IMG/VR virus record: IMGVR_UViG_3300036781_000418
Span: 62,001-126,000 of that record
Length of the DNA stretch: 64,000 nt
Direction: 5' to 3' (one strand)
Of this stretch, positions 20,575 through 62,740 are shown piece by piece. A program made the translations under genes and the position numbers. Position 1 is the first letter of the stretch, and each line of letters begins with the position of its first letter. Under the pieces are notes generated by a model. That model saw nothing but the letters and a program-made list of their open reading frames with translations, had not been told where the DNA came from and made no database searches.

Positions 20575-20600
20575 GTAGTGGATCGAGGTTAGCGATCCAC

Positions 20601-20606
20601 TATTTA
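20601..20606 (-). promoter_or_regulatory. Late promoter TAAATA
   Basis: Lies ~27 nt upstream of the gp6-like start. Confidence 0.7.
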
Positions 20607-20615
20607 GCCAGAACC

Positions 20616-30538: not shown

Positions 30539-31135
30539 TTAACCGGCGACGTTACCGCCGAGTGCCGTACCGTAACCGTCACCGGTAACGATGTTGCGCA
30601 CGTGGTCGAAGCGAAGCGTCAGGGAGATCGTGACGGCGCCGGAGTCGGCGTAGTCAAGATCACCGAACTCAGCGGCCGAGATGAACACGCCTTCAAAGAT
30701 CCAGGTAGAGGTCACGCCTTCGTCACCGTCCAACTGTTCGATCTTCATACCAAACTTGTAGTCCGAGCCCGTTGCCGCGGTGTTCAACCAGCGACCGTCA
30801 AGGTCGACACCAACCAGGCGTTGCTGGGTTTCCAGCTGTCCGGTGATGACCTTCTTGGCGAGGCCGGTGATGTCGTCTTCAACGACCATCGAGGTGGTGG
30901 ACCAGGTGTACTTGCCTGCGACGTAGGACGTCGAGTTGTAGCGGTTGATCTGAACGTTTTCGAATTCAAGCTGTGGCAGGTTGACGGTGGTGGCCTGCAT
31001 TGTCAGGTTACGAGAGTTCGTACCCGACACCAGACGGCCCATGTCCAGGAACGTCACACGCCACTTGTTCTTCATCTGTGGGTGGAGGTGTCCTGAGAAG
31101 CCGCCGGCGATACCGAAGTTGGCTAGAGTTGCCAT
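30539..31135 (-). CDS. gp19: Tail tube protein (198 aa)
   Basis: Follows the sheath gene. Tube fold pattern WRVTF...VNLPQLEFENVQI.RYNS.SYVAGKYTW.....VEDD and W.FEG.F.....GDLDY. TAAATA at 31164-31169. Confidence 0.88.
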   Translation of the reverse strand: MATLANFGIAGGFSGHLHPQMKNKWRVTFLDMGRLVSGTNSRNLTMQATTVNLPQLEFENVQINRYNSTSYVAGKYTWSTTSMVVEDDITGLAKKVITGQLETQQRLVGVDLDGRWLNTAATGSDYKFGMKIEQLDGDEGVTSTWIFEGVFISAAEFGDLDYADSGAVTISLTLRFDHVRNIVTGDGYGTALGGNVAG

Positions 31136-31182
31136 TGTTTCTCCTAATTAGAGTGCTTACGCCTATTTAGAGCGCGTACCCG

Positions 31183-33163: not shown

Positions 33164-34348
33164 TCATGTCTTCTTAGCCGCCGCCTGCGCTTTTAGGGCC
33201 AGGGCGTCCTCCAATGGGATTCCAGCTTTCGCGATCAACTTGGTCACCTTCTTCAGGTATTCGTTGCGGTACAGTTCAGGCGTCGTGGCGATCTTCAACG
33301 CCTCCAACCAGCGGCCAAGTTGCTCCAGCAGGAGCTCCTCTTCATGGTGGTAGTCAGCACCACCCGCGACTCTGAACTCCAGGTACCCGTCGGCCAGCTT
33401 ACTGAGGTTTACGGAGCTGTATTTACCAGACTGCTTCAGGATTTCCCGTGCCTCGTCCATCACCACCTTGACGTCACGCGCCCCAGCTCCAGTACCGATC
33501 GCCTTTATCAGCCGCTTGGCGTGCGGTACGGCTACGTTGGAGAACAGTCGGTTGAACTGCTTCAGCGCGTGCTCCTCGCCCATGAACAGGACCAGCTTCA
33601 GTGGATCCAGTTGGTTGAGGTTTGGGATGGAGATGTTGACGTGTACTCCAGTGCTTGAGTTCGTCTGGAACTTGGCCTTGGAGAAGAAGGCAAAGCATGT
33701 CCTCATGGTCGCGATAGCCTCCTTGGCGGGCAGTGGGGCGGTGACAATTTCAAGTCCAACACCTCGTTTATCTTCTGGCTTAATGGACGAATCTTCAACG
33801 ATCTTCCAGTCTTTAATTCCATGGTCATCGAGCTTGAAGTAAACGCCTAGCTTATCACCCAACGCGAAACCAACGCTCTTGGCGGTCTCCCAGAAGGCAT
33901 GGTGCTGATCGAGGTTGGCCTCAACCTTGTAGACCTCGTGGTGACTGGCGTCGGTGAAGCCAAACTTTGGGTCAAGGCGATGCTTCTTTACAAGCTCAAA
34001 CACCGAGCCGTAGGCGTCGTTGATCCATGCATTTTCATCTGGCTGTTCAAATTCATCTGGGTCACCTTTGTGCTCAGCTCGTCGATCTTCAACCCAGTAG
34101 TCGAACTCGCGCTCTAGCTTTTGGTGTTCAGCTCGCGACAGGGTGAAGTACTCGGCGATGATGTAGTAGTCGTCCGAGTCTAGGTCGATCGACGCGGGCG
34201 GTTCATCGTCACCATGGGCTTGAAAGAACGGTGAGTTTTCCGGTACGACCACCTCAAACTCGAAGCCAACGTGGGCGTTGGATTGGTCGATGCCGGAGGT
34301 GAGGGTCTTGGCGCTCATGGAGCGCTCGAAGAGGACGTCTAGTTTCAT
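33164..34348 (-). CDS. Putative amidoligase (COOH-NH2 ligase, Amidoligase_2-like) with CTS-like leader (394 aa)
   Basis: HVGFEFE, W.IVEDSSI, GLEIVT.P, NSSTGVHVNIS, KYSSVN and YLEFR motifs. MKLDVLFER start. Confidence 0.85.
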   Translation of the reverse strand: MKLDVLFERSMSAKTLTSGIDQSNAHVGFEFEVVVPENSPFFQAHGDDEPPASIDLDSDDYYIIAEYFTLSRAEHQKLEREFDYWVEDRRAEHKGDPDEFEQPDENAWINDAYGSVFELVKKHRLDPKFGFTDASHHEVYKVEANLDQHHAFWETAKSVGFALGDKLGVYFKLDDHGIKDWKIVEDSSIKPEDKRGVGLEIVTAPLPAKEAIATMRTCFAFFSKAKFQTNSSTGVHVNISIPNLNQLDPLKLVLFMGEEHALKQFNRLFSNVAVPHAKRLIKAIGTGAGARDVKVVMDEAREILKQSGKYSSVNLSKLADGYLEFRVAGGADYHHEEELLLEQLGRWLEALKIATTPELYRNEYLKKVTKLIAKAGIPLEDALALKAQAAAKKT

Positions 34349-37859: not shown

Positions 37860-37884
37860 TAGGCCTGAGTGTCAGGCCTATTTA
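37860..37884 (-). promoter_or_regulatory. Late promoter TAAATA overlapping a 9-bp hairpin
   Basis: TAAATA 37879-37884. Stem TAGGCCTGA/TCAGGCCTA at 37860-37880, just upstream of the ATG at 37854. Confidence 0.65.
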
Positions 37885-39763: not shown

Positions 39764-39813
39764 AGGGGCTCCATGTGATGCTTCCCTATTTAGGTGCCGA
39801 GCCGGCGTACGAT

Positions 39814-39962: not shown

Positions 39963-40163
39963 ATGAGAACCGTACAGCACATGTTTATGCCCACGCAGAC
40001 GATCAACGGGGTGATCAAGAAGGCCAACCTTCATGACGTCACCCCGTTGGAGTTGATTGAGCTCAACACCTCGTTCAACGAACTGAACGAGGGTCGCGTG
40101 CCGAGACCCGGTCAGGTCTTCACCGTGCCGATCCTAGACCGTCACTCGTCTACTGGACCGTAG
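39963..40163 (+). CDS. Small LysM-like protein (66 aa)
   Basis: TI..VIKK......L.ELN......PRPGQVFTVP pattern. This is the only plausible plus-strand gene in the region. Confidence 0.5.
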   Translation: MRTVQHMFMPTQTINGVIKKANLHDVTPLELIELNTSFNELNEGRVPRPGQVFTVPILDRHSSTGP

Positions 40164-41269
40164 CACCACTTCATGCGGAGCTGGTCAAGCGTGTTGGTGG
40201 ACACGAGCGGCTTGACAATGACACGCCACTCCTCCACGGACATGGCGCCCTTGACAAAGGACGAGCTGAGGGTCAGGAATTCTGGCTTAGGCAGCAGGTA
40301 GCAGATCGTCACGTGCGGTGAGATCCGACGGTTTGCGTCCAACAGGGCGCGCTCGTACTCTAGGTCCGCCGCACCTCGAATTCCACGGAACAGAATTGTC
40401 GCTGACAAGTCCGACGCCGCGCCAGCTACTGACTTACGATCCTTTAGTCCAAGCACGATGATGTTCTGCTGCGGCAGGCTCTGAACGTCGTGCAGCACCA
40501 TCTCGTTGATCTCGAACTCGCTGAACAGCGTCTTCTTGGCCGGGTTGGACGCACAAACAACGTACAGACGGTCAACGCACTTGGCGGCCTCGTTGATCAT
40601 GTCAAGGTGTCCAAGCGTAATTGGGTCAAAGGTGCCAGCGAACGCGCCAATTCTGGCGGTAGCCGGAACTTTCGATTGGGCACGAACGTCGTTGATCAAG
40701 ATGGCGACTTGTCGGTCCACATCATAACAGGAGGTGTCGAGTGTACGAACCTTCTCTCCAACGCCAATCACGCTGCGGATGTCGTTTGCACGTTGGAGAC
40801 GCAGCACCGTGCTGATCTTTTCATTCGACCAACCACGCTCTTTCAACCGCTCCAGTTGAACATGCTCACGCACACTGGCGTGAACGATGAGGTCGGCTTC
40901 ACACACGGCTTGCTTATCGTCCATCATACCAAGGTGCGGGTACTCGACGATGACGTCCATGTTCTTCATGACGTTTGCGACGAACTGCAGCACATGGGGC
41001 TTCGTTTCAGCCTCCATGAACTCGCGAACTTCAGACTGCGCGAAGGCCACCTCACGAAGTTCACCAAGCCCGACCTCACGACCAATTAAGACCCACAGCG
41101 CGGTGCGCGAAGCCCGCATCTCGGGGGTTGTCTGGTTCGGCAGTCCGAACCAGTACTGGCGGATAAAAGCGTCTACACTGAAGACACTGTAGTCCCCAAG
41201 GCCGGCGCCGAGCTTCTCGACGATGGTTGATTTGCCCGAGGCTGCTTGGCCGACGACGATGATCTTCAT
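40142..41269 (-). CDS. coaE-coaD: Dephospho-CoA kinase-like / phosphopantetheine adenylyltransferase fusion (375 aa)
   Basis: N-terminal half has GQAASGKSTI...SVD..I, EYPHL and QLERLKERG..(CoaE-like). C-terminal half has AFAGTFDPITLGHLD, V..NPAKK.LFS, FRGIRG..DLEYE..L..ANR and SSS.VK (CoaD). Confidence 0.85.
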   Translation of the reverse strand: MKIIVVGQAASGKSTIVEKLGAGLGDYSVFSVDAFIRQYWFGLPNQTTPEMRASRTALWVLIGREVGLGELREVAFAQSEVREFMEAETKPHVLQFVANVMKNMDVIVEYPHLGMMDDKQAVCEADLIVHASVREHVQLERLKERGWSNEKISTVLRLQRANDIRSVIGVGEKVRTLDTSCYDVDRQVAILINDVRAQSKVPATARIGAFAGTFDPITLGHLDMINEAAKCVDRLYVVCASNPAKKTLFSEFEINEMVLHDVQSLPQQNIIVLGLKDRKSVAGAASDLSATILFRGIRGAADLEYERALLDANRRISPHVTICYLLPKPEFLTLSSSFVKGAMSVEEWRVIVKPLVSTNTLDQLRMKWCYGPVDE

Positions 41270-42885: not shown

Positions 42886-42912
42886 AAAATAGGACCGTGT
42901 AGGTCCTATTTA
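42886..42912 (-). promoter_or_regulatory. Late promoter TAAATA in the 5' arm of a 10-bp hairpin
   Basis: AAATAGGACC 42887-42896 pairs with GGTCCTATTT 42902-42911. Confidence 0.68.
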
Positions 42913-49045: not shown

Positions 49046-50566
49046 TTACTTTCCTAGCTTCGCGTTCAACGCGTCAATTTGACCGTTCAGCGTTGTTACC
49101 TGGGCCTGGTGAATGGACAAGTTTTCATCAATGCCAGACAGGTCACGCTTAAGGTCACTCACGGTAAACTGCAGGCTCTGGGCTGTAGCCGTATCTGGCG
49201 GTGTCTGTGCAAGGGCCTCTTGGATGAGCGCCTCTTGGTTGGCGATGTCCGCTAGCTTGTTGGTGCGTGCCTGCGTAATGGAGTTAACGATCGACTGTTC
49301 ACTGTCTCGCGTGCTAGTCTTGCTGCTGATGGAGGCCAACGTTTCCTTGTCGTCGGAGGCTGGGGCGACTGCCGGCTGCGAGGTCTCAGGCGTGTCCGTG
49401 TTCGATGGGGCGGCCGTCGCGGCGTCAGCCGACACCGGTGTAGTAGCCGAGGCGGTGGTCGTGGCGGTAGCCGCACGTTGGGAGTCACCGGTGTCGCTCG
49501 TGCCTGACGGCTGCACGACCCCATTGGTGACCTGCTGCTGGCCACCAGTTGGCTCGCCGCTGCGGGTGGATACGGTGGACGGTGGTGTGGTGTTCCAAGC
49601 GGCCTCAATGAAGCCACGACGGAAGGCGACGAGGTTGAAGCTGTTGAACTGTTCAGCCGACAGGGACTCAACTAGGTCGATGGAGACGCTCAACACCGAC
49701 GGAAATGGTACCTCCTTGTTGGAGGTCTTGTCAAAGATGCCCGTTGGCAGCCAGTCAACGTCGTCCGGCCACGTCCACTGTAGTCGCGTCAACACGACTG
49801 AAATTGGACCTAGCAAGTTGCGCCAACCGAAGAGCTCCAGCACCGGAGGCGGCGCGCCAAGCTTACCCTGAAACTGAATTGCCTGGTTTTCACCGAAGTA
49901 CGGCTTCGTCCAACCACGCAGGGTGTTGAGGTAGATGTAGTTACGACGCGCCTCTTCACGAGTACGACACGTGAACTTCGCGTTCGAGATGTTGTACTGG
50001 CCTGAAGACGAGCCCTTGTACTTTTGAAACTCACCTGGCATCTGCGACGGTGACAGCGCCTCGTAGTTGGCCGTGTAGGACTCACTGACCTGCGGCATGA
50101 TCTCGAACAGCACCTCGTCTTCACTGAGCGGTTCAATCGCCAGCAGTGGACCGAGGTCGGTGATCGAACTTGACGCACCGTCGGCAACCTTCGCCCGCAG
50201 CTTGACGATATGGCTGTTGTCGTCCGTCTGTTCTGGACCGATGGCCTCACGCACCTGCGTGGCCGTAAACGAGCTTGGTGTGGCCGCTAGCTTTGCGCCT
50301 TCAGATGAGGCCATCGAGCTGTATGGGTTGTCGGGCAACGTCAGACCAGAGGAACCAACGGCCCCCAACGATGAGAAGGTCGGTGCATCGCTCGTCATCT
50401 TGCTGAACGACGTCGAGGCCGCGCTACCAAACGTGCTGTTCATGCTCGTGTACGACTCGTTGATGACCTTCGTCGAGTCAGCCACCGAGTAGTTCAACAC
50501 CGAGTCGGACGTTGAACCGACACCAAGGGTTGGTAGGGTTGGAAATAGAGATGATAGTGCGGCCAT
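49046..50566 (-). CDS. Tail tube cap/initiator-like protein with Thr/Ala-rich linker and coiled coil (506 aa)
   Basis: F..MPQVSESY.ANY, Y.GS.S..YNI..AKF, GAPPPVL.L.GW...GP.SVVLT...W.WPDDVDW. Located in the baseplate operon. Confidence 0.65.
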   Translation of the reverse strand: MAALSSLFPTLPTLGVGSTSDSVLNYSVADSTKVINESYTSMNSTFGSAASTSFSKMTSDAPTFSSLGAVGSSGLTLPDNPYSSMASSEGAKLAATPSSFTATQVREAIGPEQTDDNSHIVKLRAKVADGASSSITDLGPLLAIEPLSEDEVLFEIMPQVSESYTANYEALSPSQMPGEFQKYKGSSSGQYNISNAKFTCRTREEARRNYIYLNTLRGWTKPYFGENQAIQFQGKLGAPPPVLELFGWRNLLGPISVVLTRLQWTWPDDVDWLPTGIFDKTSNKEVPFPSVLSVSIDLVESLSAEQFNSFNLVAFRRGFIEAAWNTTPPSTVSTRSGEPTGGQQQVTNGVVQPSGTSDTGDSQRAATATTTASATTPVSADAATAAPSNTDTPETSQPAVAPASDDKETLASISSKTSTRDSEQSIVNSITQARTNKLADIANQEALIQEALAQTPPDTATAQSLQFTVSDLKRDLSGIDENLSIHQAQVTTLNGQIDALNAKLGK

Positions 50567-51201
50567 TACTTAGCGTCCTTGATCTTCTTAGCCATGATCT
50601 TAGCCACGTTGTCGGGCAAGCCAGTAATCACCTTGAACTTGTCGTGCATGTCCTTCCGAGCGGCGGTGCGTGCCAACGTGCCGGAGACCAGCTCCAGTGG
50701 AATTTCGTCGGTCATGTTGTTCAAGATTTCGTCGGAGCCACCACTGTCGTCAGAATCTTCATCACGGCCGACGTTGATCATGTAGTGCTTGATTGGCTGC
50801 TCGTCGTCCGTCTTCAGGTACTTGTTCATCAGGTCCACGTACGTGCGCCCACGGTCCGAGCCGGTCATGACGACCAACGGCTCCTTGCCCTGCTCACGTA
50901 GCTTGTTCAGGGCCGCCATGACGTCGTTGGCGTGTACGAAGTTGATGCCGTCCGCCTTACCGGACGCCTGCATAAACTTGATGCGGTCCTCAGGCGAGAG
51001 TGGGTTACGGTTCTTATCCTGTCCAGACTTCTCACCATGGATCACCGCAACGACCGGGGTCACGTCGAGGTTGAGCTCCTTGCCCTTCGGTCCACGCGTC
51101 GCCTTCTTGGCCCGTTCAAAGAGGGCGTAGTGGGCGATGGTCGGCGGTTGAAACCGCCCAAACATGACCAGCACCGGTGTACGAGATGTGGGATTTGCCA
51201 T
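50566..51201 (-). CDS. Cytidylyltransferase-like (HIGH-superfamily) nucleotidyltransferase (211 aa)
   Basis: FGRFQPPTIAH, NPLS..DR..FM, V.TGSDR and SGT.AR motifs. Start MANPTSR at 51201, after TAAATA at 51230-51235. Confidence 0.85.
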   Translation of the reverse strand: MANPTSRTPVLVMFGRFQPPTIAHYALFERAKKATRGPKGKELNLDVTPVVAVIHGEKSGQDKNRNPLSPEDRIKFMQASGKADGINFVHANDVMAALNKLREQGKEPLVVMTGSDRGRTYVDLMNKYLKTDDEQPIKHYMINVGRDEDSDDSGGSDEILNNMTDEIPLELVSGTLARTAARKDMHDKFKVITGLPDNVAKIMAKKIKDAK

Positions 51202-51343
51202 TGATCGTGCAGCGTAAGTGGGTATGTCATATTTAGATCGAGAGTAGGTCCTTGATCCTGACACCAATGGACCGTGTTCAGGTCGTTAAATAGAATCCAC
51301 CTTATGCTGTTCTACACTATCGCCGTGCCCTCGGCTTTGCCTC

Positions 51344-51826
51344 ATGACAGCAGTTGTTCCTAAGAAAACCGTCAAACCCGCCAAACGAGAAAAGTCCACG
51401 TCGACTAAAGGTCACTACGTCAAGAACGCCGACCTGCTGCCTGCCTTCCATGAGGCCAAGGCGCTGAACAAGCTGACGCCGAAGCTAGCTGAGATGCTCA
51501 TGAAGATCGCGGAGCGCTACTCGTACCATCCATGGTTTGTTGGCTTCTCCTACCGCGAGGACATGGTCGCGTTCGCCATCGTCAACCTCTGCGCTAACTG
51601 GCATAAGTTCAACCCTGAGAAGTCAAGCAACCCCTTCTCCTACTACACGACGGCCTGCTACCGCAGCTTCCAGGCCTACCTTGGTGACGAGCGCAAGGAG
51701 CGCGACGGCCGTGACAAGCTGCTGATTGAAGCCGGGGCCAACCCATCGTTTAACTACCAGATGCGCGGTGGCAAAAGCTCGGACGACCATGCCTTTTCAG
51801 GCGGAGGAGGTGGAGACCATGAGTAA
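51344..51826 (+). CDS. gp55: Late-transcription sigma factor (160 aa)
   Basis: HYVKNADL, IAE.YS..P.F..FSYREDMV..A..N......FNPEKS.NPFSYYT.ACY..F.....ERK signature. Upstream of gp47/gp46 as in T4. Confidence 0.93.
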   Translation: MTAVVPKKTVKPAKREKSTSTKGHYVKNADLLPAFHEAKALNKLTPKLAEMLMKIAERYSYHPWFVGFSYREDMVAFAIVNLCANWHKFNPEKSSNPFSYYTTACYRSFQAYLGDERKERDGRDKLLIEAGANPSFNYQMRGGKSSDDHAFSGGGGGDHE

Positions 51827-52412: not shown

Positions 52413-53489
52413 ATGATGGTATCCAAATTTAACGACTTTGCCAACGCCCGAGTTCTCATGTTCACCGACATTCACGTCGGTGCTCGTGGCAACTCGGAGC
52501 AGCACCTCAATGACTGCATCCAGTACATCGAGTGGTTCATCGAGCTGGCCAAGCGCGAGCGTGCCACCCACATCGCCTTCCTCGGCGACTACTTCGAAAA
52601 CCGCAGCTCGATCAACGTCCAGTCCCTGAACGTTGGCACGCAGATCATGCGTCGCCTAAACTCGCTCGGCATCCCAATCATCTTCATGGTTGGAAACCAC
52701 GATCTGTACCACCGCAACACGCGTAAGGTCTTTTCAACGGACTCCTACAAGGACCTTGAGAACGTGCTGGTTGTCTCCGAACCGATGGAGCTGACGAAGG
52801 ACGTGTTAGTCGCCCCGTACCTCTTCAAGCAAGAGTACCTCGACATGGCCGACCAGATCAACTCCCACAAGTACGTCTTCGGTCACTTTGAGTTTCGTGG
52901 GTTCGTGGTGACCGGTGACACCAAGGTCCTCGAGCACGGCCCCGATGCAAGCGCCTTCACCGGTCCGAAGTTCATCTTCTCGGGCCACTTCCATAAGCGA
53001 CAGGTGGCCGGTAACGTCATCTACATCGGCAACACGTTCCCCACGAACTTTGGCGACGCTTGGGACACTGAACGCGGTGCTTCTCTGCTCGACATGTCAT
53101 CCGACGACGTCCTGTTCTTCGACTACCCCGACGCCCCACTGTTCTACAAACTTCGCATGACCGAGCTGTTGGCTAACCAGTCGCTCTCCTTCAAGGAGGG
53201 CGGTCGAGTTCGGTGTACCTTGGACCTTGATGTTGGCTACACTGACGTGCAGACGATCCGCGAGGAGATGATTGAGGCCTACAAGCTCCGTGAATTCCTC
53301 ATTGAAGAGGACTTCATCTCCAAGAAGGAGCTGATCGCCGAGGGCCTCGACGTTGACTCACTCGCCGTCGACCTATCCATGCTGCACAATACGATCGGCA
53401 CCCTGATCCGTGAAGGCGTGCAGCAGTCCCCAACGATCGACCCTGACCTGTTGATCAGCATCTTCGACGAACTTAAACTGGAAAAGTAA
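52413..53489 (+). CDS. gp47: Recombination nuclease subunit, Mre11/SbcD-like (358 aa)
   Basis: FTDIHVG, FLGDYFENR, VGNHD, FGHFE and FSGHFHK metallophosphoesterase motifs. Confidence 0.93.
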   Translation: MMVSKFNDFANARVLMFTDIHVGARGNSEQHLNDCIQYIEWFIELAKRERATHIAFLGDYFENRSSINVQSLNVGTQIMRRLNSLGIPIIFMVGNHDLYHRNTRKVFSTDSYKDLENVLVVSEPMELTKDVLVAPYLFKQEYLDMADQINSHKYVFGHFEFRGFVVTGDTKVLEHGPDASAFTGPKFIFSGHFHKRQVAGNVIYIGNTFPTNFGDAWDTERGASLLDMSSDDVLFFDYPDAPLFYKLRMTELLANQSLSFKEGGRVRCTLDLDVGYTDVQTIREEMIEAYKLREFLIEEDFISKKELIAEGLDVDSLAVDLSMLHNTIGTLIREGVQQSPTIDPDLLISIFDELKLEK

Positions 53490-53490
53490 C

Positions 53491-53808
53491 ATGGCCTTTT
53501 GGAAAACTGCCCCCGTCTCGGAAGAGCCTGAAATTACCCTGTACGACTGGAAGGTCTTCGAGCTTAACGACGGCTCGCGTCACTTCGTCGGCACCAACGG
53601 CGCGCGCGGCTCCGGCCGAGTCAGTTCGTCGATCCAAACATTTGACCCAACCACGATGAGTGGCGTGACGCGCTCTGGGCGCGTCTACAAGCTGGTTGGT
53701 GAAAGTGGGGATTCAATTAACGGTCTCTACACCTGGACAGGTTGGTGCCATGTTAACCGTGTCGATGACTGCATCGACGTATCAAACTTTATCGGAGAAA
53801 CTAAATGA
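53491..53808 (+). CDS. Hypothetical protein (105 aa)
   Basis: RHFVG....GRVSS.I..FD.....GVTRSGRVY.L.G pattern. Coupled within the operon. Confidence 0.7.
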   Translation: MAFWKTAPVSEEPEITLYDWKVFELNDGSRHFVGTNGARGSGRVSSSIQTFDPTTMSGVTRSGRVYKLVGESGDSINGLYTWTGWCHVNRVDDCIDVSNFIGETK

Positions 53809-54347
53809 CCTGTATCGTCGGACTTGAATACCACGGCAAGGTGCACATTGGTGGAGATCTACAAGGCACTGGCTGGAACAACAAGATCAAGCACGACCAG
53901 CCTAAGGTGTTCGTACGCAACGGCATCGCCTTCGGCTACACGACCTCCTACCGGTTCGGTCAGCTGCTTGAACATGTCCTGCCCGATCCAATCGTGCCGG
54001 CTAATCCAGATGAAATCTACCCATGGTTGATCAAGGTTCTGGTGCCGAGCATCAAGGACACGCTGAAGGACGCTGGCTATGAAGGTGGTGGCAACTGCCT
54101 AATCGGTGTAAAGAGCACCTTGTGGGAGCTGCAGAACGACTACTCAATCCTTCGTTCCGTGAACGGTTACGCGTCGGTTGGTTCTGGATATGAGTACGCC
54201 AACGGCGCGATGTACGCCATGTTGACCAAGCTGAAAGGACAGGCGTTGACGGACGAAGGCGCTCAAGACCTCGTTGAGCTGGCCATCGAGGCGGCCGGCA
54301 CGTTCTCACCGTCGGTGGGTGTTGACTCCGTGATCGTGACGGTGTGA
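53805..54347 (+). CDS. HslV/proteasome-beta-like Ntn hydrolase (180 aa)
   Basis: MTCIVG start (N-terminal Thr), GGD, K, FG..., ASVGSG..YA.GAM..., A.EAA..F...VG: Ntn-fold pattern. Confidence 0.78.
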   Translation: MTCIVGLEYHGKVHIGGDLQGTGWNNKIKHDQPKVFVRNGIAFGYTTSYRFGQLLEHVLPDPIVPANPDEIYPWLIKVLVPSIKDTLKDAGYEGGGNCLIGVKSTLWELQNDYSILRSVNGYASVGSGYEYANGAMYAMLTKLKGQALTDEGAQDLVELAIEAAGTFSPSVGVDSVIVTV

Positions 54348-56101
54348 TGACGACGAACCTTATTGGACTTAACACCATGAGGTTCCTGGAGCTTACCCTC
54401 CAGAACTTCATGAGCTTCGGTAACCGTCGTACGGTGTTTGACCTGTCAACTCCTGGAACCTACCTGATCAAGGGTGAGAACAAGGACGTGGGTGGCTCCA
54501 ACGGTTCAGGCAAGACGTCGGTGATCAACGGCATCTGCTACGCCCTGTTCAACCAACCATTTGACGACATCACGCTGAACCGCCTGATCAACACGACGAA
54601 CGCCTCGAAGAACACGTTGATGGAGGTCTCGCTGTCCTTCACCAAGGGCGTGGATGAGTACCTCATCACACGTACACGTGGCGCCGAGTTTATCACGACC
54701 ATCTTGAAGAACGGCGTTGACGTCACCCCTGGTAAGGGCGTCACGGAGTGTGACGCGTTGATCTCTGAGATCGTGGGTATGACACATGAGCTGTTCACCC
54801 GCACCGTCGTCTTCTCGGGCAACAACCAGGCTTTCCTCTCACTGCCAATTTCCCAACAGCGCTCGATCATTGAGGAGCTCTTCAACATCAAGATGCTCTC
54901 GGACCTGGCCATGAAGCTGCGTCCGCTGATCAAACAAACTGAGACCGACATCTCCGTTCAGCAGGCCGTCGTTCAACAGCAGCAGGTCGCCGTCGACCTG
55001 CACCGTAAACACCTCGTTGACGCGGCCACGCGGGTCAAGCGCTGGGACATGGACCGCAACTTGAGCATGTCCACGATCGAGAAGACGCTGGCCTCCCTTG
55101 AGGGCGTGGACTTTGAGTTTGAACGTGTGCTGCATGATGAAGTTAAGAACTACACGCAGAACCGAGTCCACGTTCAACAACAGGTCAACGACGCCACCCG
55201 CATCAAGCGCGAGCTGACGAAGAAGGTCGAGAATCTGTTGGGTGAAGAGCGTCACCTGCTCGACGCCAAGTGCCCGTACTGCAAGCAGAAGTACCACGAC
55301 ACGTCCGCGAAGCTGGCCGAGATCAACGCTGAGCTGGACAAGCTGAACGACTCATTGGTGACCGTCGAGGACATGGAGCTTCGGGCAACCGAGGACTTGA
55401 AGAAGGTCGACGAGCTGTTGGCCGACCGCCGCAGTCGCATCAAGCACCCCGACTTCGACAAGCTGCTCAAGGCCAAGTCCGACGCGGCCCTACTGCAGGA
55501 GAAGCTGGATGACCTGAAGATCCAGACCAACCCACACCACGAGGCCTTCGATAAGCTAAACAGTGAAGGCGAGCCGATCATCGAAACGTCCAAGGTCGAC
55601 GTGTTGAAGAAGCGGCTGGAACATCAGCAGCTCCTACTTAAGCTGCTCGTCAACAAGGACTCGTTCGTCCGTCATCGAATCTTGAACAAGTCGCTGCCGA
55701 TTCTCAATGAACGGATGAACTACTACACCAAGCTGTTGGGTCTCCCACACGCCGTAAAGTTCCAGGCTGACATGTCCTGCACGGTGACTGAGTTCGGGCG
55801 TGAGCTTGACTTTGGTAACCTGTCGACCGGAGAGAAGAAGCGGGTGAACACGGCCATGAACTTCGCGTTCTCCGAGGTCCGGGCCCTGCTCCATGCCCGA
55901 GTCAACCTCATGCTGATCGACGAGATCGACGGTGGACTTGATCCTGAAGGGCTGGAGGCGGTCGTCAAGCAGGTGAAGTTGAAGTCTAGGGCCGATCACA
56001 TGACGATCTTCATGATCTCCCACCACCCATTGATCGACGGTCGACTAGATCGAACGATTTTGATCCGTAAGGAGCAGGGGTTCTCCTCGTTGGTAGAGTG
56101 A
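54344..56101 (+). CDS. gp46: Recombination ATPase, Rad50/SbcC-like (585 aa)
   Basis: NFMSFGN, Walker A GGSNGSGKT, coiled coil with a CPYC zinc hook, signature LSTGEKKR and Walker B LIDEIDGGLD. Confidence 0.95.
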   Translation: MMTTNLIGLNTMRFLELTLQNFMSFGNRRTVFDLSTPGTYLIKGENKDVGGSNGSGKTSVINGICYALFNQPFDDITLNRLINTTNASKNTLMEVSLSFTKGVDEYLITRTRGAEFITTILKNGVDVTPGKGVTECDALISEIVGMTHELFTRTVVFSGNNQAFLSLPISQQRSIIEELFNIKMLSDLAMKLRPLIKQTETDISVQQAVVQQQQVAVDLHRKHLVDAATRVKRWDMDRNLSMSTIEKTLASLEGVDFEFERVLHDEVKNYTQNRVHVQQQVNDATRIKRELTKKVENLLGEERHLLDAKCPYCKQKYHDTSAKLAEINAELDKLNDSLVTVEDMELRATEDLKKVDELLADRRSRIKHPDFDKLLKAKSDAALLQEKLDDLKIQTNPHHEAFDKLNSEGEPIIETSKVDVLKKRLEHQQLLLKLLVNKDSFVRHRILNKSLPILNERMNYYTKLLGLPHAVKFQADMSCTVTEFGRELDFGNLSTGEKKRVNTAMNFAFSEVRALLHARVNLMLIDEIDGGLDPEGLEAVVKQVKLKSRADHMTIFMISHHPLIDGRLDRTILIRKEQGFSSLVE

Positions 56102-56128
56102 TAAATAGGGGAGCAATGCTCCCCTATT
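56102..56128 (+). promoter_or_regulatory. Late promoter TAAATA overlapping an 11-bp hairpin
   Basis: TAAATA 56102-56107. Stem AATAGGGGAGC/GCTCCCCTATT, ATG at 56133. Confidence 0.68.
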
Positions 56129-56819: not shown

Positions 56820-57293
56820 ATGAAAACCTTGCTCGAACTTCTCTCCATGCTTCATGAGGCCGACGACGATACCACTGAGGATCAAGCGAAGACCGCCAAG
56901 GACCTCTGGGACGCCGGGTCACCTGAGGCCTACGTTTCGAAGATCCAATATGGCATCAAGAAGAACGACAACGGCACCTACCAGGTGACAACCGAGAACA
57001 ACGACCGCCGTCAGGTGATCAGCCAGTCGGTCTCGGCTTCCTACGTCTCGTCGAACTACGTCAAGATGTCCAAGGACGCGACCCCAGACGTCGAAGGCTA
57101 CGTGCTCTACCGTTCGGTCGGCCAGCAGGAAGCCATCCAGTACAAGGGTGATACAGCTCGAATCGACGTGGACGGTAAGACCGTCACCATGAACGCGGGC
57201 GACTACCTCATTAAGACGACGGACGACAACGGTAAGACCTTCTTCTCAGTTGAAACTGAGGACGCCTTCGAATCGGATTGGGAACAGAAGTGA
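56820..57293 (+). CDS. Hypothetical, possibly internal head protein (157 aa)
   Basis: MKTLLELLSMLHEA leader. TAAATA at 56790-56795 overlaps the upstream stop. Confidence 0.72.
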   Translation: MKTLLELLSMLHEADDDTTEDQAKTAKDLWDAGSPEAYVSKIQYGIKKNDNGTYQVTTENNDRRQVISQSVSASYVSSNYVKMSKDATPDVEGYVLYRSVGQQEAIQYKGDTARIDVDGKTVTMNAGDYLIKTTDDNGKTFFSVETEDAFESDWEQK

Positions 57294-58108
57294 AGATTCA
57301 TCAGCTGCATGAGATTTCGTCGGCCGACGAGTACCGCCAGACCACCGCGTATGGTGAGCCCGTGTTCATCATCGAACACTCCTCGACAGGGGACTTTAGC
57401 CCATTCAACAAGTTGATCGCGGTGGCGGCAAAGAAGGCTATGACGGGCGGCCACATGATGTTGAAGGTTGAGGTTAGGAACGCGCTTAAAAGCACCAAGG
57501 GCCTGTCGAAAGCCGACATCGGCGAGATCGACGTATCGAGAAACGACTTGATCTCAATGGAAGGTCTTGAGTGGTTTGACAGCTTCTTGAACATCTCCTC
57601 CAACAACTTGACGGAGCTACGCTGTGCGAAGACCATGCACGCGCTTGAGGTGGACAACAACGACCTGCACACCCTTACAGGTGGTCCAAAGCACTTGAGC
57701 GGACACTACTCAGCTTCTCACAACAAGCTGACTGACTTTTCCGGAGCACCGGTCGAGGTCTCGCAATCGCTGCACCTGTCGCACAACCAGATCTCGTCGT
57801 GGAGCGGCGTGAGCGGTATGCATATTCAGGACGACCTTGACCTAACCGGTAACAAGCTGAGCTCCATGCGCGGTGTTGATAAGGTCCTCAGCGGCTGTGA
57901 GGACCTTATCCTTACCGACAACCCACCGCCAAAGCACGTGTTGAACCTGTTCAACGTCGACGAGATCCGTCAGGGGGTTACCTTTGACGACGCCAAGCTG
58001 TCTAAGATCATCAACAAGCACCTGCACACCGGTGGTAAAGAAGGCATGCTCGACTGCCAAGAAGAGTTGATCGACGCTGGGTACTCACAGGAAGTCGCCT
58101 CCCTATGA
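57290..58108 (+). CDS. Leucine-rich-repeat-like protein with CTS-like leader (272 aa)
   Basis: GTG start (MKIHQLHEI) overlapping the upstream TGA. Several xxNxLxxLxGxP repeats. C-terminus CQEELIDAGYSQEVASL. Confidence 0.82.
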   Translation: MKIHQLHEISSADEYRQTTAYGEPVFIIEHSSTGDFSPFNKLIAVAAKKAMTGGHMMLKVEVRNALKSTKGLSKADIGEIDVSRNDLISMEGLEWFDSFLNISSNNLTELRCAKTMHALEVDNNDLHTLTGGPKHLSGHYSASHNKLTDFSGAPVEVSQSLHLSHNQISSWSGVSGMHIQDDLDLTGNKLSSMRGVDKVLSGCEDLILTDNPPPKHVLNLFNVDEIRQGVTFDDAKLSKIINKHLHTGGKEGMLDCQEELIDAGYSQEVASL

Positions 58109-58911
58109 AGCTACTTCAGGCGCTGTGTGAAGATACTCGAAAGATGAAGATGAAGGATGGGTCGTCCTACCGCATCGTTGAAAGCCCAAACACGCGTACC
58201 ATCTACATCGAAGAAACCGAGACAGGTGACCTAACGCCGTTCCATGGTCAATGGGAGCATATGCGCGAGGGCTTTGAGCACATGATTAAAATCAGTATTA
58301 CCTACGGTAGAATTGGCGGCTTCAACAGCTTCCACGGACTGCCAGCCGAGATCTGTGAGCACGCTGAGTTTAAGTTGGCGGGCAATGACTACATGGACAA
58401 GCTTCAAGGCTGGCCTAGTGGTGGTGAACCATACAGCTTCACGATTGAAAACGCCGCCCTCTCTACCTTTGAAGGTTTTCCAGACAAGTTTGGACACGAT
58501 CTTTCAGTTGAAAACGTTCCCATTAAGTCGTTCAAGGGCTTCCCATCTAACGTTGGCTATTCCTGCAACCTACATGATCTTGACGTAGTTGACTTCACCG
58601 GTGCTACTGGATCTACTGGGCGCAACGTTGACCTTCGCCGTTGTCATGAACTAAAGTCGTTCCGTGGCATTGACAAGCTGTTCAGCGGTGGTTTGGCAAG
58701 CACCTTGTCGATTGATAAGGTGCGTTCAATGAAGCATATCCTGCACGTCATGAACGTTCCAAATCTCCGATTTGTCAGCTTCTCTGACAACACACCCTTG
58801 TCACTACTCATCAACGAACACCTCGATGCCGGTCACGGCAAGGCGGGCGTTGTTCACCTTCAAAACGCCCTGCTCGATGCGGGGTATGACGAAGAGTTCG
58901 CTAGCCTTTAA
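58105..58911 (+). CDS. Leucine-rich-repeat-like protein with CTS-like leader (268 aa)
   Basis: FNSFHGLP, LSTFEGFP, IKSFKGFP and LKSFRGI repeats. C-terminus LQNALLDAGYDEEFASL. Confidence 0.8.
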   Translation: MKLLQALCEDTRKMKMKDGSSYRIVESPNTRTIYIEETETGDLTPFHGQWEHMREGFEHMIKISITYGRIGGFNSFHGLPAEICEHAEFKLAGNDYMDKLQGWPSGGEPYSFTIENAALSTFEGFPDKFGHDLSVENVPIKSFKGFPSNVGYSCNLHDLDVVDFTGATGSTGRNVDLRRCHELKSFRGIDKLFSGGLASTLSIDKVRSMKHILHVMNVPNLRFVSFSDNTPLSLLINEHLDAGHGKAGVVHLQNALLDAGYDEEFASL

Positions 58912-59091: not shown

Positions 59092-59147
59092 GTCAGCCGC
59101 CGACCCTAAATAGGTCAGATCGTTCTGATCTGACTCATTCCATATAC

Positions 59148-59717
59148 ATGACTGAAAAACTAGAGAAGCCCAAGCGCAAGATGCGCCCTGGAGGGGGTAA
59201 GGCGAAGGGTAACGGCTTTGAAGGCCAGGTAGCCAAGAAGCTTTCAGCCGCCCTACCCATCAACTTCATCCGCTCACCTGGGTCAGGAGCCCGTGTCGGT
59301 GGCAAGAACTTCGACAAGCTCGGCGCGCTGTTCGGGGCCGAGGCCATGAAGCTCTTCAGCGCGGACGTGGTTCCAATCAACGAGAAGGAGGCGGGCTGCA
59401 CGTTCCGCTTCTCGGTGGAGTGCAAGTCGTACGCGACGTCTGACAACTTCGTTGCGCTAGCCAGTGGAACGGCCAACATCTTCGCATGGTTCCAAGAGTC
59501 CGTGGTTGACGCGGCGAAGACTGACCGCCATCCAATGTTGATCGCCCACTGGAACCGCTCTCCCAACTACGTCTTCGTTCGTCCTTGGCATATGCCACAG
59601 GCCGTCAAGCCAGTTCTCACGTTGATTCACCGCAACGAAGAAGGCTTTGGTGAAACCCTTGACGTCTACATTCTTGAAGACCTGTTGAAGCACCCTGAAC
59701 TTTGGATTGCCAAATGA
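59148..59717 (+). CDS. Holliday junction resolvase, Hjc-type PD-(D/E)XK (189 aa)
   Basis: K.KGNGFE..VAK.LS, R.PGSGA, ADV and FSVECK motifs. TAAATA at 59107-59112 followed by an 8-bp hairpin. Confidence 0.85.
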   Translation: MTEKLEKPKRKMRPGGGKAKGNGFEGQVAKKLSAALPINFIRSPGSGARVGGKNFDKLGALFGAEAMKLFSADVVPINEKEAGCTFRFSVECKSYATSDNFVALASGTANIFAWFQESVVDAAKTDRHPMLIAHWNRSPNYVFVRPWHMPQAVKPVLTLIHRNEEGFGETLDVYILEDLLKHPELWIAK

Positions 59718-60295
59718 TTACCAACCCTCGCTGGACCATCCGCGCGGACGCCGTTCGCCCAGACGGCAACTACTCTGACTTGCTGTCACAAGTCCGTCGT
59801 CACTACGACATGTACTGCTCCGCTGAGCAGTTCCTTGGCCCCTACAACGCCAAGGCCCGTGGCAAGACCATCTACGTGCCGCCATCGCGTGACATGATGC
59901 GTGAGCTGATTAAGCAATGTGGTGTCAACGACGTCACGTACTACGCCTTCCTGTCCTCGCTCGTTCGCTTCTGTGAGACGACCAAGGGCAACATGGCCCT
60001 GCCGTTGGCCCATCCGTCGACCGTGCACTCAATTCAGCTGCCTGAAGGCACGTTCGAACTGCGTCAGCAGGAGCACTCAAAGCCGGTGCTGCAGCTTGGC
60101 GTAGGTGATCCAGTCGAGCTGCGCGGTGACGTGAAGGGCAAGGTCGGCTTCGCAATCTTGCGTCCACGCATGACCCAACGAGGCATGACCTCGGCGACGC
60201 AGTGGGAGGCCCTCCTGTTCGAACACCGTCATGGTTACCTACCTATCTGGACCGACTCAGGTGTCAATCCTCGGTGGGCTGGCTCCCTGACCTAA
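59714..60295 (+). CDS. Hypothetical protein resembling the TnpB N-terminal REC/WED half, with no RuvC (193 aa)
   Basis: ATGA-coupled to the resolvase. Colinear, by-eye resemblance to IS605 TnpB N-terminal motifs (see findings). Unverified. Confidence 0.5.
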   Translation: MITNPRWTIRADAVRPDGNYSDLLSQVRRHYDMYCSAEQFLGPYNAKARGKTIYVPPSRDMMRELIKQCGVNDVTYYAFLSSLVRFCETTKGNMALPLAHPSTVHSIQLPEGTFELRQQEHSKPVLQLGVGDPVELRGDVKGKVGFAILRPRMTQRGMTSATQWEALLFEHRHGYLPIWTDSGVNPRWAGSLT

Positions 60296-60303
60296 ACGGC
60301 TGG

Positions 60304-60331
60304 TTGTATGGTGCCGAGTAGCTTCTATAAT
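60304..60331 (+). promoter_or_regulatory. Sigma70-type promoter for the PolA-like ORF
   Basis: TTGTAT (60304-60309), 16-nt spacer, TATAAT (60326-60331). The ATG at 60341 would be nearly leaderless. Confidence 0.6.
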
Positions 60332-60340
60332 GGTCACTAC

Positions 60341-61585
60341 ATGTCACCATACAAGCTTCACCATCACCACGTTCCAGTGGACCACGTCCTCCACTGGTCG
60401 TTCTTCTGGCCTGACAAGCAGCGCATCCACAAGTCAAAGGTGCAGGTTCGACAGGACCTTGTGCTGTGGTTGGCCGCGGCCTGGGTTGGCTCAAGGTCGG
60501 GCCCACCGGCCCCAAACGGTTTTCGAGGTATCAAGGTTCGACTAACCTCGCTCCGAGAGCTGGTGCGTGACTTCCAGCCAGCCGTTGAGTTCTTCTTCAC
60601 CATCACCCAGCTAGGGTTCAACCTTGAGGACAACTTTGAGGTGAGCACCCTCGTACCGAAGACCCTGTCACCTGAGGCCACTCGTGTCATTGAGGCTGAA
60701 GTCCAGCTGATGAGCTACGTTCCGGCTGAACCGCCGACCGACGCGAACGTCTCGACGGTCTATATCCAATCCAACCTTGATGTTGAGGACCTGGTGCAGC
60801 GCACGTCCAGTGCCGGACGTGGTGAGCTTGTTCCACAGCTCCGTTGGTTGATTGCCCATGGACCTAGGCATGAGTTTCACTTCATGCCGTCTGGGCGTCT
60901 CCAACTGCGAGATACCAGCGTCTACCCCGTCATGGCGATTGAAACCTGGCCAGGTTGGTTGCGCGAGGAGTTGTTTGGGGCGGGCATTGACTTGGACGCA
61001 GCCTACATCCAGTTCCTGATGCACTGGCTCAAGGAGTCGTTCAATCGTTCCGAAGCGAAGCTCAAGCTGTACTTCCCAAGCCTCATGCGGCTGATGTACG
61101 ACAAGGAAGTTTACCGTCGAGAGCTCTGCGAAGAGGGCCTGAAGTTGGAGTACAACGACACGAACAAGTTGATGATCAAGCGGCTGATCATGTGCCTCGC
61201 CAACGGTTCACGCATTTCAGGAAAGATCCTTGTTCGTCGTACTGAATTTTCAGCCGCCACGGCCGTGCTGTTGGCGGCACTTCCTGACGCGACGGACGCC
61301 CAGCTCATTGAGGTTGGCGAGGTGCTTCGTCGAATCAACGACGAGTTTAACTCGGCGCGGCGGTACGTCTACATGGAGCTGAACGCCAAGCACCCTACGC
61401 GTAAGGCGATCAAGGAGGTCTTCATCGAGTACTTCATGTGGGAACGTGAAGCTCGATACGCCCTTTGGGAGGCGATCGACCGCCATGGCATCATGGTTCA
61501 CGACGGCATCGACGGTGTTCCAGCCGAGTACCGAGCTCGACTCGGCGAACTGATGGAGCAGCTTGACCTTCGCTTCTCAGTATAG
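60341..61585 (+). CDS. Minimal family-A polymerase-fold protein with no exonuclease domains (~414 aa)
   Basis: SGRLQ...LREELF..IDLDAA (pre-motif and motif A Asp), IKRL..CLANG (motif B-like) and IMVHDG (motif C). Start placed at 60341, after the TATAAT box. Confidence 0.7.
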   Translation: MSPYKLHHHHVPVDHVLHWSFFWPDKQRIHKSKVQVRQDLVLWLAAAWVGSRSGPPAPNGFRGIKVRLTSLRELVRDFQPAVEFFFTITQLGFNLEDNFEVSTLVPKTLSPEATRVIEAEVQLMSYVPAEPPTDANVSTVYIQSNLDVEDLVQRTSSAGRGELVPQLRWLIAHGPRHEFHFMPSGRLQLRDTSVYPVMAIETWPGWLREELFGAGIDLDAAYIQFLMHWLKESFNRSEAKLKLYFPSLMRLMYDKEVYRRELCEEGLKLEYNDTNKLMIKRLIMCLANGSRISGKILVRRTEFSAATAVLLAALPDATDAQLIEVGEVLRRINDEFNSARRYVYMELNAKHPTRKAIKEVFIEYFMWEREARYALWEAIDRHGIMVHDGIDGVPAEYRARLGELMEQLDLRFSV

Positions 61586-61588
61586 ACA

Positions 61589-61724
61589 CGGCGACACGAA
61601 GCGACGCCGTCGTCGCTCGGTCGTTGAAGGTGATGAGCCAAACAGACGAGGGACCCTAGGGTCCCTCGGTTCATTTCGTGTCGCCGCTACATGAACCCGC
61701 ACTATCTGCCAGCTAATGCCTCTA
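61589..61724 (+). repeat. Dispersed structured intergenic element, copy 3
   Basis: CGGCGACACGA (61589) pairs with TCGTGTCGCCG (61676-61686). Perfect 22-nt palindrome at 61647-61668. Core ATGAACCCGCACTATCTGCCAGCTAATGCCTCTA at 61691-61724. Confidence 0.88.
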
Positions 61725-61739: not shown

Positions 61740-61976
61740 TTAGTACACGGGGTGCGACGACTTGGCCGCGGCTTCAAGGCGCTTGTTGATGAACTCCACC
61801 ATCATGTCCCGTTCAAGGGCGGAGCGATCCATCACTGACTCGTAGGACCAGGAGCCTCGGGAATAGTACGAGATTTCGATGGACGCCTTGATGAGCGTCT
61901 TCACCTCAAGCTGCATTCGATCAATCGACTGTCGGATCTTGGCGTGATCGCCGCTCAAGATCAGGCGGTGAAAAAA
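61740..61976 (-). CDS. gp51-like / chaperone-T segment, either a -1 frameshift extension of the gp26-like gene or a separate 58-aa ORF from 61916
   Basis: Open -1 frame begins across the T TTT TTC site. I.Y..RG..SYE.VMD.S..ER..M.EFI helical pattern. Confidence 0.65.
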   Translation of the reverse strand, partial: FFHRLILSGDHAKIRQSIDRMQLEVKTLIKASIEISYYSRGSWSYESVMDRSALERDMMVEFINKRLEAAAKSSHPVY

Positions 61977-62740
61977 CTCACTGGGTTCAGTGGGAGCTCC
62001 ACCTTCATGTCCTGGCCACAGTCCTTGCACTTGATAGTCACCACTTGATCAGGACCCCAGTCGTTCAGGTTCTCGGCCGCCTTCGTGATGGACTCGATCT
62101 GTGGCGACGTCAGCGTCTTGATCCACTCTTCAATGTGTTCACGCTCCGTGGTGGTGTCTACTGACTCGATCATGCAGAGTAGGTTGTGGACCGACAGCTT
62201 CTTCACGTCGTCGATCGTCATCTCCTTCGACATACCAGTCATCTGGAACATCTCAATGACGTCACGGAAGCGGAGTGGGCGGGTCACCACGACTTCACCG
62301 GAGCTAAGGGTAACCTGACGAACCGTCTCAATCAAGGTCGGGTCCAACTGCTTCATGGCGAGCAGCATGTTGTCAAGGTTGACGATGTAGGAGTGGTCCT
62401 TGGCCTCGGCACAGGTGTGCTTCACCTCGATACCGAACTCATTACCGTACGTTACCAACCGTAGGAAGAACAGCAGGGCGTCGATGTCGCGACCGAAGAG
62501 CTCCAGTGGCTTCTTGATGCTCGGTGCGCACTCGGCGACGATGTCCTCGATGGCGCGACCATTGAACAGCAAGTCCTGGTTCTTCAGGCTAATTTCGTTC
62601 AAGGCCGACAGCGGCTTGATTTGAATTTCACCGGTTGAGTAGCTGGCCTCCAACTCACCGTTGTGGTACAGGGCACCACGTGACGGCAGCTGGAAGACGC
62701 GGCCTGGGAGACGGTGCTTGAGGAGTGGATTGGTTGACAT
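61961..62740 (-). CDS. gp26: Baseplate hub/tail assembly chaperone, gp26-like (259 aa)
   Basis: LPSRG..Y, I.IKPL.A..EI.L.N.D.L.NG.AI, D.DALL..LR..TYG, HTC and C..CG....VEL....FF signature. TAAATA at 62784-62789 (minus). Confidence 0.85.
   Translation of the reverse strand: MSTNPLLKHRLPGRVFQLPSRGALYHNGELEASYSTGEIQIKPLSALNEISLKNQDLLFNGRAIEDIVAECAPSIKKPLELFGRDIDALLFFLRLVTYGNEFGIEVKHTCAEAKDHSYIVNLDNMLLAMKQLDPTLIETVRQVTLSSGEVVVTRPLRFRDVIEMFQMTGMSKEMTIDDVKKLSVHNLLCMIESVDTTTEREHIEEWIKTLTSPQIESITKAAENLNDWGPDQVVTIKCKDCGQDMKVELPLNPVSFFTA

Follow-up and report, generated by a model that had tools for sequence, protein, structure and literature searches.

A minimal family-A polymerase fold encoded at the end of the SbcCD recombination block of a T4-like jumbo phage

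What role would a minimal family-A polymerase have in a T4-like phage whose genome also encodes a family-B polymerase? The gene that raises this question lies at positions 60308–61585, on the plus strand, of a 64,000-nucleotide stretch (the window) that covers positions 62,001 to 126,000 of IMG/VR virus record IMGVR_UViG_3300036781_000418; the whole record is 342,591 bp long, with direct terminal repeats and a G+C content of 56.6%. An earlier note, made from the letters alone, had read the gene as a stand-alone minimal family-A polymerase under its own sigma70 promoter. The polymerase part of that description is borne out by the fold and by the intact acidic residues of motifs A and C. The stand-alone part gives way to a different arrangement: the gene is the last of a conserved three-gene module. 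With a probability of about 0.5, the product is an exonuclease-less, low-processivity, DNA-templated DNA polymerase for 3'-end extension or short gap filling in recombination intermediates or branched concatemers.

The fold is the most direct evidence. An AlphaFold2 (AF2) model built on 68 homologues reaches a predicted local distance difference test score (pLDDT) of 92.8 and a predicted template modelling score (pTM) of 0.87. In Foldseek comparison with the PDB, the 50 best matches are all family-A DNA polymerases, the best being KlenTaq (E 0.018, probability 0.98); no match reaches E 0.001. The model shows the family-A architecture of thumb, palm and fingers over residues 144–425, and is predicted to superpose on the right-hand fold. 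The earlier note had named a structure prediction without a palm domain as grounds for abandoning the assignment; the AF2 model has a palm, formed by a strand at 227–229 and a hairpin at 395–402. Against BFVD, the list is headed by two uncharacterised proteins from Caudovirales that are uncultured (E 3e-8 and 8e-6), followed by virophage DNA replication or helicase/primase/polymerase proteins (Zamilon, Qinghai Lake virophage; probability 1.0), which rank above ordinary phage PolA. We read these virophage matches as the TV-Pol family of Iyer, Abhiman and Aravind.

The gene and the parts of its product are as follows (plus strand throughout):

60308–61585, plus: longest polymerase frame in the list of open reading frames (ORFs), 425 amino acids (aa) from ATG 60308; this numbering is used throughout
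60341–61585, plus: polymerase coding sequence from the probable true start, ATG 60341, 414 aa; homologue N-termini align at M12
60341–60736, plus: N-terminal extra domain, aa 12–143, alpha/beta and possibly winged-helix-like, from the AF2 secondary structure; outside the polymerase matches
60737–60982, plus: two-helix thumb and beta-hairpin; SG(R/K)L and R201-D202 in the hairpin, R219 after it
60983–61012, plus: motif A, strand 227–229 with invariant D228; the fingers open with A232-Y233 and Q235
61166–61210, plus: motif B-like O-helix segment with invariant K291, M295 and A298-N299-G300-S301
61439–61459, plus: W-E-R-x-A-R-Y helix with invariant E379, R380, R383 and Y384
61490–61516, plus: motif C, beta-hairpin 395–397/400–402 with invariant H398-D399-G400 at the turn

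The four motifs that had been picked out by eye are all present, in the expected order, and conserved in homologues: SGRL at aa 195–198 (nucleotides 60890–60901), IDLDAA at aa 227–232 (60986–61003), K291 followed by LANG at aa 297–300 (61178–61207), and VHDG at aa 397–400 (61496–61507). Invariant in the 68 homologues are G196, L198, R201, D228, K291, A298-N299-G300-S301 and H398-D399-G400. Across 17 polymerase domains that go down to 18% identity, the invariant set is R201, P207, P215, R219, D228, K291, G300, E379, G394, H398, D399 and G400; at position 299–300, two distant relatives carry YG. Judged from these alignments, the motifs are no chance strings, and invariance of this kind at such divergence appears to be what an active enzyme would show. 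The retained active-site residues suggest that the polymerase is catalytically competent.

The residues also stand where a family-A enzyme would place them. The AF2 model has two thumb helices (159–168 and 172–183), a hairpin (187–195/201–206) that carries SG(R/K)L and R201, and helical fingers (232–389) that follow directly on the D228 strand. R201 and R219 presumably correspond to the primer-terminus and substrate contacts of family A, and the W-E-R-x-A-R-Y helix seems to us similar to the ER...N...Q helix ahead of motif C in Pol I. In the model, D228 lies on the palm strand 227–229 and H398-D399 at the turn of hairpin 395–402, which is the family-A placement; one aspartate on a palm strand and another at a hairpin turn is the topology described for palm domains (PMC7824862). 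The N-terminal part had been called unrecognised over some 180 residues. This now holds only for the extra domain at 12–143, since residues 144–225 form the thumb and beta-hairpin. For the extra domain, an ESM Atlas model gives weak winged-helix neighbours (TM 0.4/0.55), which is the sole lead.

The polymerase belongs to a family that is named by no database searched (Pfam, PHROGs, NCBIfam, PADLOC and PDB). A word search of 5.8 billion proteins yields 174 homologues, nearly all of about 415 aa, 40–52% identical and unnamed, on contigs that reach about 380 kb. A profile search of 1.84 billion representatives yields only 49 proteins, including a few very distant members of 360–750 aa. Three distant relatives (P0163, P0165 and P0166) sit on contigs of 2–4 kb, and their extra regions are unrelated to the protein encoded upstream of the polymerase. 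The start codon follows from the homologues: 60 of 67 start one residue ahead of the M12 column, so that ATG 60341 is the likely start, which agrees with the almost leaderless ATG noticed earlier. The profile searches that had been proposed as a check against known families were run and came back empty. Pfam gives no match for the polymerase at E up to 1, nor for any of the 68 homologues; none of nine divergent family members scanned matches a Pfam family; PHROGs, NCBIfam and PADLOC are blank; PDB sequence searches with the single sequence and with two profiles of the family (A1 and A3) return noise only. PF00476 has no match anywhere in the genome, the two profiles have none in the T7 genome, and tblastn against 50,697 GenBank phage records finds no match to the polymerase. 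The family is found in metagenomic assemblies only.

The genome around this gene is that of a T4-like phage with a replisome of its own. T4-like traits are a T4-type baseplate hub, a gp55-like sigma factor and gp46/47-like SbcCD proteins, and in syntenic contigs the portal and prohead protease are also T4-type. A family-B polymerase is encoded elsewhere in the genome (993-aa frame), as had been expected for a T4-like phage, and a DnaG-type primase (phrog_47, E 3e-33) adjoins a DnaB-like helicase. Since these replication proteins are present, the minimal family-A enzyme is best read as accessory and not as the replicase, which is how the earlier note had seen it. Judged by the tail sheath, the closest phages in culture are Ralstonia phage RsoM2USA (53% identity), Stenotrophomonas phages CM1 and RAS14, and Xanthomonas phages Xoo-sp13 and XacN1.

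Gene order places the polymerase at the end of a recombination block. On the plus strand, the order is a gp55-like sigma gene, SbcD, an HslV-like gene, SbcC, four ORFs without clear assignment, a PDDEXK_15 nuclease, a 193-aa protein and the polymerase; a hairpin follows, and then the baseplate hub gene on the minus strand. The assigned genes upstream of the polymerase are:

51344–51826, plus: gp55-like late sigma factor (phrog_234, E 9e-30)
52413–53489, plus: SbcD/gp47-like
53805–54347, plus: HslV-like, 180 aa, between SbcD and SbcC (PHROG 'peptidase HslV family', E 7e-20)
54344–56101, plus: SbcC/gp46-like
59148–59717, plus: PDDEXK_15 nuclease, first gene of the module, placed in PHROGs with RusA-like Holliday-junction resolvases
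59714–60295, plus: WED+REC-like partner gene; 193 aa when read from ATG 59714, the longest frame opening at TTG 59702

The order SbcD, SbcC, further genes, PDDEXK_15, WED/REC-like protein, polymerase and minus-strand hub is kept in contigs with highly divergent polymerases, where it runs on into a gene of 1040–1059 aa, the T4-type portal and the prohead protease. The nuclease, the WED/REC-like protein and the polymerase are a deeply conserved module with the polymerase last. Because it always follows the nuclease and the TnpB/Cas12f-like gene, the polymerase is read as an accessory DNA-synthesis module rather than a replicase. Two further points concern the same block. The gp55-like sigma gene lies directly upstream of the SbcD and SbcC genes, as in the T4 55-47-46 region. 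Two adjacent, overlapping plus-strand ORFs (57278–58108 and 58105–58911; 276 and 268 aa) have no clear family and are absent from the syntenic contigs examined; the one at 57278–58108 has weak leucine-rich-repeat matches (E 7e-4).

The protein encoded just upstream is unusual in its own right. Its gene begins within the end of the PDDEXK gene, start and stop codon overlapping as ATGA. The AF2 model (pLDDT 86) finds its 25 best Foldseek matches exclusively among Cas12f, TnpB and Cas12k chains (best E 2e-3, probability 1.0); none reaches E 0.001. By this model, the protein would have the fold of the N-terminal WED+REC lobe of TnpB/Cas12f without the RuvC part. Pfam, PHROGs, NCBIfam and PADLOC offer no sequence-level family for it, and its counterparts between nuclease and polymerase in the syntenic contigs are homologous (hhalign E 7e-53 and 3e-34). 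The last 20 residues are highly conserved and modelled as disordered, which suggests a docking tail. A complex prediction of the polymerase with this protein scores 0.00 and is evidence neither way.

Transcription is where the reading departs most from the earlier one, and it involves these sites:

60304–60331, plus: TTGTAT (60304–60309), 16-nucleotide (nt) spacer, TATAAT (60326–60331); judged a chance match
59107–59114, plus: TAAATAGG, 34 nt ahead of the PDDEXK start; probably the promoter from which the three-gene unit is read
56102–56109, plus: a further example of a TAAATA site, like 59107–59114
42905–42912, 39785–39792, 37877–37884 and 31162–31169, minus: TAAATA sites, examples
61647–61668, no strand: GC-rich palindromic hairpin, a perfect 22 nt with a 9-bp stem and 7 GC pairs, between the convergent polymerase and baseplate-hub genes

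The TTGTAT and TATAAT strings proposed as a sigma70 promoter of the polymerase gene do exist, but little speaks for promoter function. TTGTAT agrees with TTGACA at three of six positions, and a consensus scan passed the site over; TATAAT is no commoner than chance, with two occurrences in the window where dinucleotide shuffles predict 3.0; and in homologous contigs, where the polymerase gene overlaps the upstream gene by 4 nt or starts 2 to 13 nt after it, the site is not conserved. A different motif precedes the first gene of the module, and a stand-alone polymerase gene under its own sigma70 promoter finds no support. TAAATA occurs 23 times in the window against 4.0 expected, an enrichment of about six-fold, and TAAATAGG six times against 0.25. 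The TAAATA sites always match the strand of the gene that follows and mostly lie 25–50 nt ahead of the start codon; genes preceded by them include those for the tail tube, head-tail adaptor, virion proteins and baseplate hub. In T4, the late promoter is TATAAATA. TAAATA is probably the T4-late-type promoter of this phage. No TAAATA motif lies between 60296 and 60340, directly ahead of the polymerase gene, and the nearest upstream is that at 59107–59114; 59148–61585 is probably one three-gene unit read from there, which would make its expression late. The hairpin at 61647–61668 is likely a bidirectional terminator that ends the module.

Some smaller observations belong to the same region. At several TAAATA sites, AATAGG is the 5' arm of a hairpin whose 3' arm is CCTATT. 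The 290 nt from the terminal hairpin to the hub gene hold only a possible small minus-strand ORF (frame 61740–62030), which corresponds to genes of 62–76 aa after the hub in other contigs. The 375-nt region 3' of the polymerase gene folds modestly better than shuffled sequences (z −2.5), and an Rfam search of 56–64 kb gives no match.

From fold, neighbours and promoter, a working model can be drawn. Transcription from the T4-late-type TAAATA promoter would yield the PDDEXK nuclease, then the WED/REC-like protein, then the polymerase, probably late. The polymerase, whose gene closes the gp55/gp47/gp46 (Mre11-Rad50-like) block, would act beside a nucleic-acid-binding protein and a junction nuclease. 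Its substrates might be recombination intermediates or branched concatemers, in which it would extend 3' ends or fill short gaps. Low processivity is suggested by the very short thumb. DNA rather than RNA synthesis is favoured because DNA polymerases score higher structurally, and possibly also because a bulky residue, Y233, stands five residues after D228, at the place of the Pol I steric gate.

Comparison with known systems shows how far each resemblance goes. TV-Pols are described as a minimal core of superfamily A, with a thumb of two helices, an invariant Arg in a beta-hairpin, two Asp in the palm and RxxxK in the fingers (PMC2579912). The phage polymerase likewise has a two-helix thumb (159–168 and 172–183), R201 in the hairpin, D228 and D399 in the palm, a fingers Lys and no nuclease domain, and, as with TV-Pols of the Sputnik V13 kind, the virus that encodes it has another replicative polymerase. 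It differs in that RxxxK is only partly kept (a basic residue is frequent at −3 or −4 of K291 but is not conserved), in its N-terminal domain (all-helical there, alpha/beta here) and in context: neither a D5-like helicase nor an integrase, resolvase or transposase of a mobile element is linked, and the phage gene sits in the core recombination block of a jumbo phage with SbcCD, the PDDEXK nuclease, the WED/REC-like protein and the baseplate hub as neighbours. Profiles A1 and A3 find no match at E up to 10 in Ma-LMM01, a stated carrier of a TV-Pol, and these searches yield no profile-level link to that family.

With Pol I-type enzymes (Klenow, KlenTaq, T7 gp5, Pol theta and Pol nu), the protein shares thumb, palm and fingers over residues 144–425. 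It is less than half their size, lacks the exonuclease domain, fails PF00476, has a very short thumb, and carries Asn for the motif B Tyr and Gly for the motif C Glu. The CcPol-MP/PolA-SSB systems of SCCmec and Firmicute elements (PMC7581432; 10.1101/2022.12.02.518924) similarly set a truncated family-A polymerase beside a small beta-barrel partner, but CcPol-MP is close in sequence to bacterial Pol I and the phage family is not; the phage partner precedes the polymerase and has a WED+REC fold, and the pair has neither a helicase nor a serine recombinase as neighbour. N4 RNA polymerase II and the T7-like RNA polymerases belong to the same structural superfamily, can be of minimal size (the N4 large subunit has 404 aa) and have a locally similar motif B. 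The T7-like family itself (PF00940) is recognised by a profile match together with the motif B Tyr that senses the 2'-OH, and the phage protein has neither.

These resemblances supply the rival explanations. The main one, a minority reading that deserves to be taken seriously, is a primase-polymerase, whose minimal family-A core would begin DNA chains de novo on single-stranded DNA, with the OB-like barrel of the WED/REC neighbour as template binder. TV-Pols have been predicted to be primase-polymerases (PMC2579912), priming by CcPol depends on a small OB-fold partner from a neighbouring gene (10.1101/2022.12.02.518924), a conserved barrel-containing protein is always encoded just upstream of the phage polymerase, and the virophage helicase/primase/polymerase proteins are its nearest named viral structural neighbours. 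Several facts tell the other way: a DnaG-type primase is already present beside the DnaB-like helicase, no helicase, integrase or resolvase of the TV-Pol and CcPol contexts adjoins, and the partner has the WED+REC fold of TnpB/Cas12f rather than that of a plain OB of the single-stranded DNA-binding protein type. Primer extension seems to fit better than priming. Less probable, and unlikely overall, is a minimal single-subunit RNA polymerase like N4 RNA polymerase II that transcribes a subset of genes or makes RNA primers or R-loops. N4 RNA polymerase II, T7 RNA polymerase and mitochondrial RNA polymerase are among the structural matches, and a non-significant hhalign alignment sets K291..N299-G300-S301 on motif B of T7 RNA polymerase and H398-D399 on motif C. 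The structural scores of these enzymes are lower, Asn stands at the Tyr position, and the phage has a gp55-type transcription system. The two-gene arrangement presumably has a parallel in the heterodimeric N4 enzyme.

The polymerase might also work together with its two companions in a more specific way. The trio could form a module for heteroduplex- or guide-directed DNA synthesis or repair, in which the WED+REC protein, by fold a homologue of the TnpB/Cas12f lobe that binds guide and heteroduplex, would hold an R-loop or D-loop (perhaps with RNA) and pass the 3' end to the polymerase, with PDDEXK replacing RuvC; this is a long shot. A slightly smaller chance still attaches to a template-independent or otherwise specialised nucleotidyl transferase for counter-defence or DNA modification (end tailing, a decoy polymer, modified nucleotides). 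It would suit an accessory, phage-specific enzyme, the window contains amidoligase- and cytidyltransferase-like genes that hint at uncommon nucleotide chemistry, and specialised family-A enzymes of the DpoZ type exist and are among the structural matches; yet PADLOC and the other family searches are blank, the gene has a fixed position within the core recombination block and not in a variable island, and R201 and R219, which we take to be substrate contacts of family A, are retained. The Rep-like, template-independent and anti-defence options of the earlier note find no specific support, there being no PADLOC match and no adjacent helicase or origin-binding gene. Least probable of all, and barely credible, is an inactivated polymerase fold kept for DNA binding or scaffolding. 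Motif B does lack its canonical Arg and Tyr, and motif C its second acidic residue, but sequences down to 18% identity show no change at either metal-binding Asp position, at the fingers Lys or at the hairpin Arg.

Several points weigh against the reading as a DNA polymerase of recombination intermediates. Measured against the motif B pattern RxxxKxxxFxxxYG, K291 and G300 are invariant, but no canonical Arg is conserved at −4, Met stands in for the Phe and Asn (N299) for the Tyr; in motif C, Gly occupies the place of the second acidic residue. No sequence method ties the family to PolA, T7 RNA polymerase or TV-Pol: hhalign against alignments of PolA, T7 gp5/T7-like DNA polymerases and RNA polymerases of the T7-like type stays below 4% probability, the templates being narrow (effective number of sequences, Neff, about 2), and against T7 RNA polymerase alone it is likewise not significant. 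The non-significant alignment to T7 gp5 is nevertheless collinear, setting D228, K291, N299 and H398-D399 on D475, K522, Y530 and H653-D654; because of its statistical insignificance, it serves as a register check only. Co-location with SbcCD may merely mirror the core gene order of T4-like phages. Finally, RsoM2USA lacks the polymerase gene but keeps SbcD- and SbcC-sized genes in the same order, a PDDEXK nuclease with 39% identity, a hub with 47% identity and the WED/REC-like protein (E 3e-15), so the polymerase is dispensable for at least one lineage. In the 1.4-kb unannotated slot of that phage where the polymerase gene would be expected (MG752970, 251624–253024), ORFs do not exceed 77 aa, and neither a tRNA, a polymerase remnant nor an Rfam match above threshold is found. 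Neither profile matches in XacN1 or RAS14, and, as far as these data go, the polymerase is confined to uncultivated members of the lineage.

Elsewhere in the window, a few features stand apart from the polymerase. Very large minus-strand ORFs lie at 4671–13427 (2918 aa), 2–4135 (more than 1378 aa, open at the window edge) and 16948–20679 (1243 aa). Seven head-to-tail ORFs of 152–198 aa, with overlapping stops and starts, fill 22793–26248 on the minus strand and may be a paralogous array; the next ORF (26248–27540) and that at 30539–31135 both match tail-tube PHROG 4542. Scattered among structural genes on the minus strand are an amidoligase-like gene (33164–34348), a nicotinamide-nucleotide adenylyltransferase-like gene (40142–41269) and a cytidyltransferase-like gene (50566–51267), which may hint at nucleotide or DNA modification chemistry.

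A minimal, TV-Pol-like family-A polymerase in a virus is of a kind known since 2008. What is new is a family with its own N-terminal domain that cannot be detected by sequence from any described family, its placement in the core block of T4-like jumbo phages, and the invariable presence beside it of a PDDEXK nuclease and a TnpB/Cas12f-like lobe that lacks RuvC; the literature search found no paper on such a pairing. It has been proposed that minimal family-A polymerases (TV-Pols) represent the state from which Pol I and T7-type enzymes arose, and CcPol-MP is the only biochemically studied relative found in the literature. The phage family adds a well-conserved branch, missed by sequence methods, that stands beside a canonical family-B replisome in a T4-like jumbo lineage, and its compact core of about 280 residues lets one ask what the smallest working family-A polymerase needs. 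If the trio does guide DNA synthesis, it would couple a TnpB-like recognition lobe to a polymerase rather than to a nuclease. If the enzyme is a dedicated polymerase for recombination or late processing beside gp46/47, the T4 paradigm of recombination-dependent replication would gain a component.

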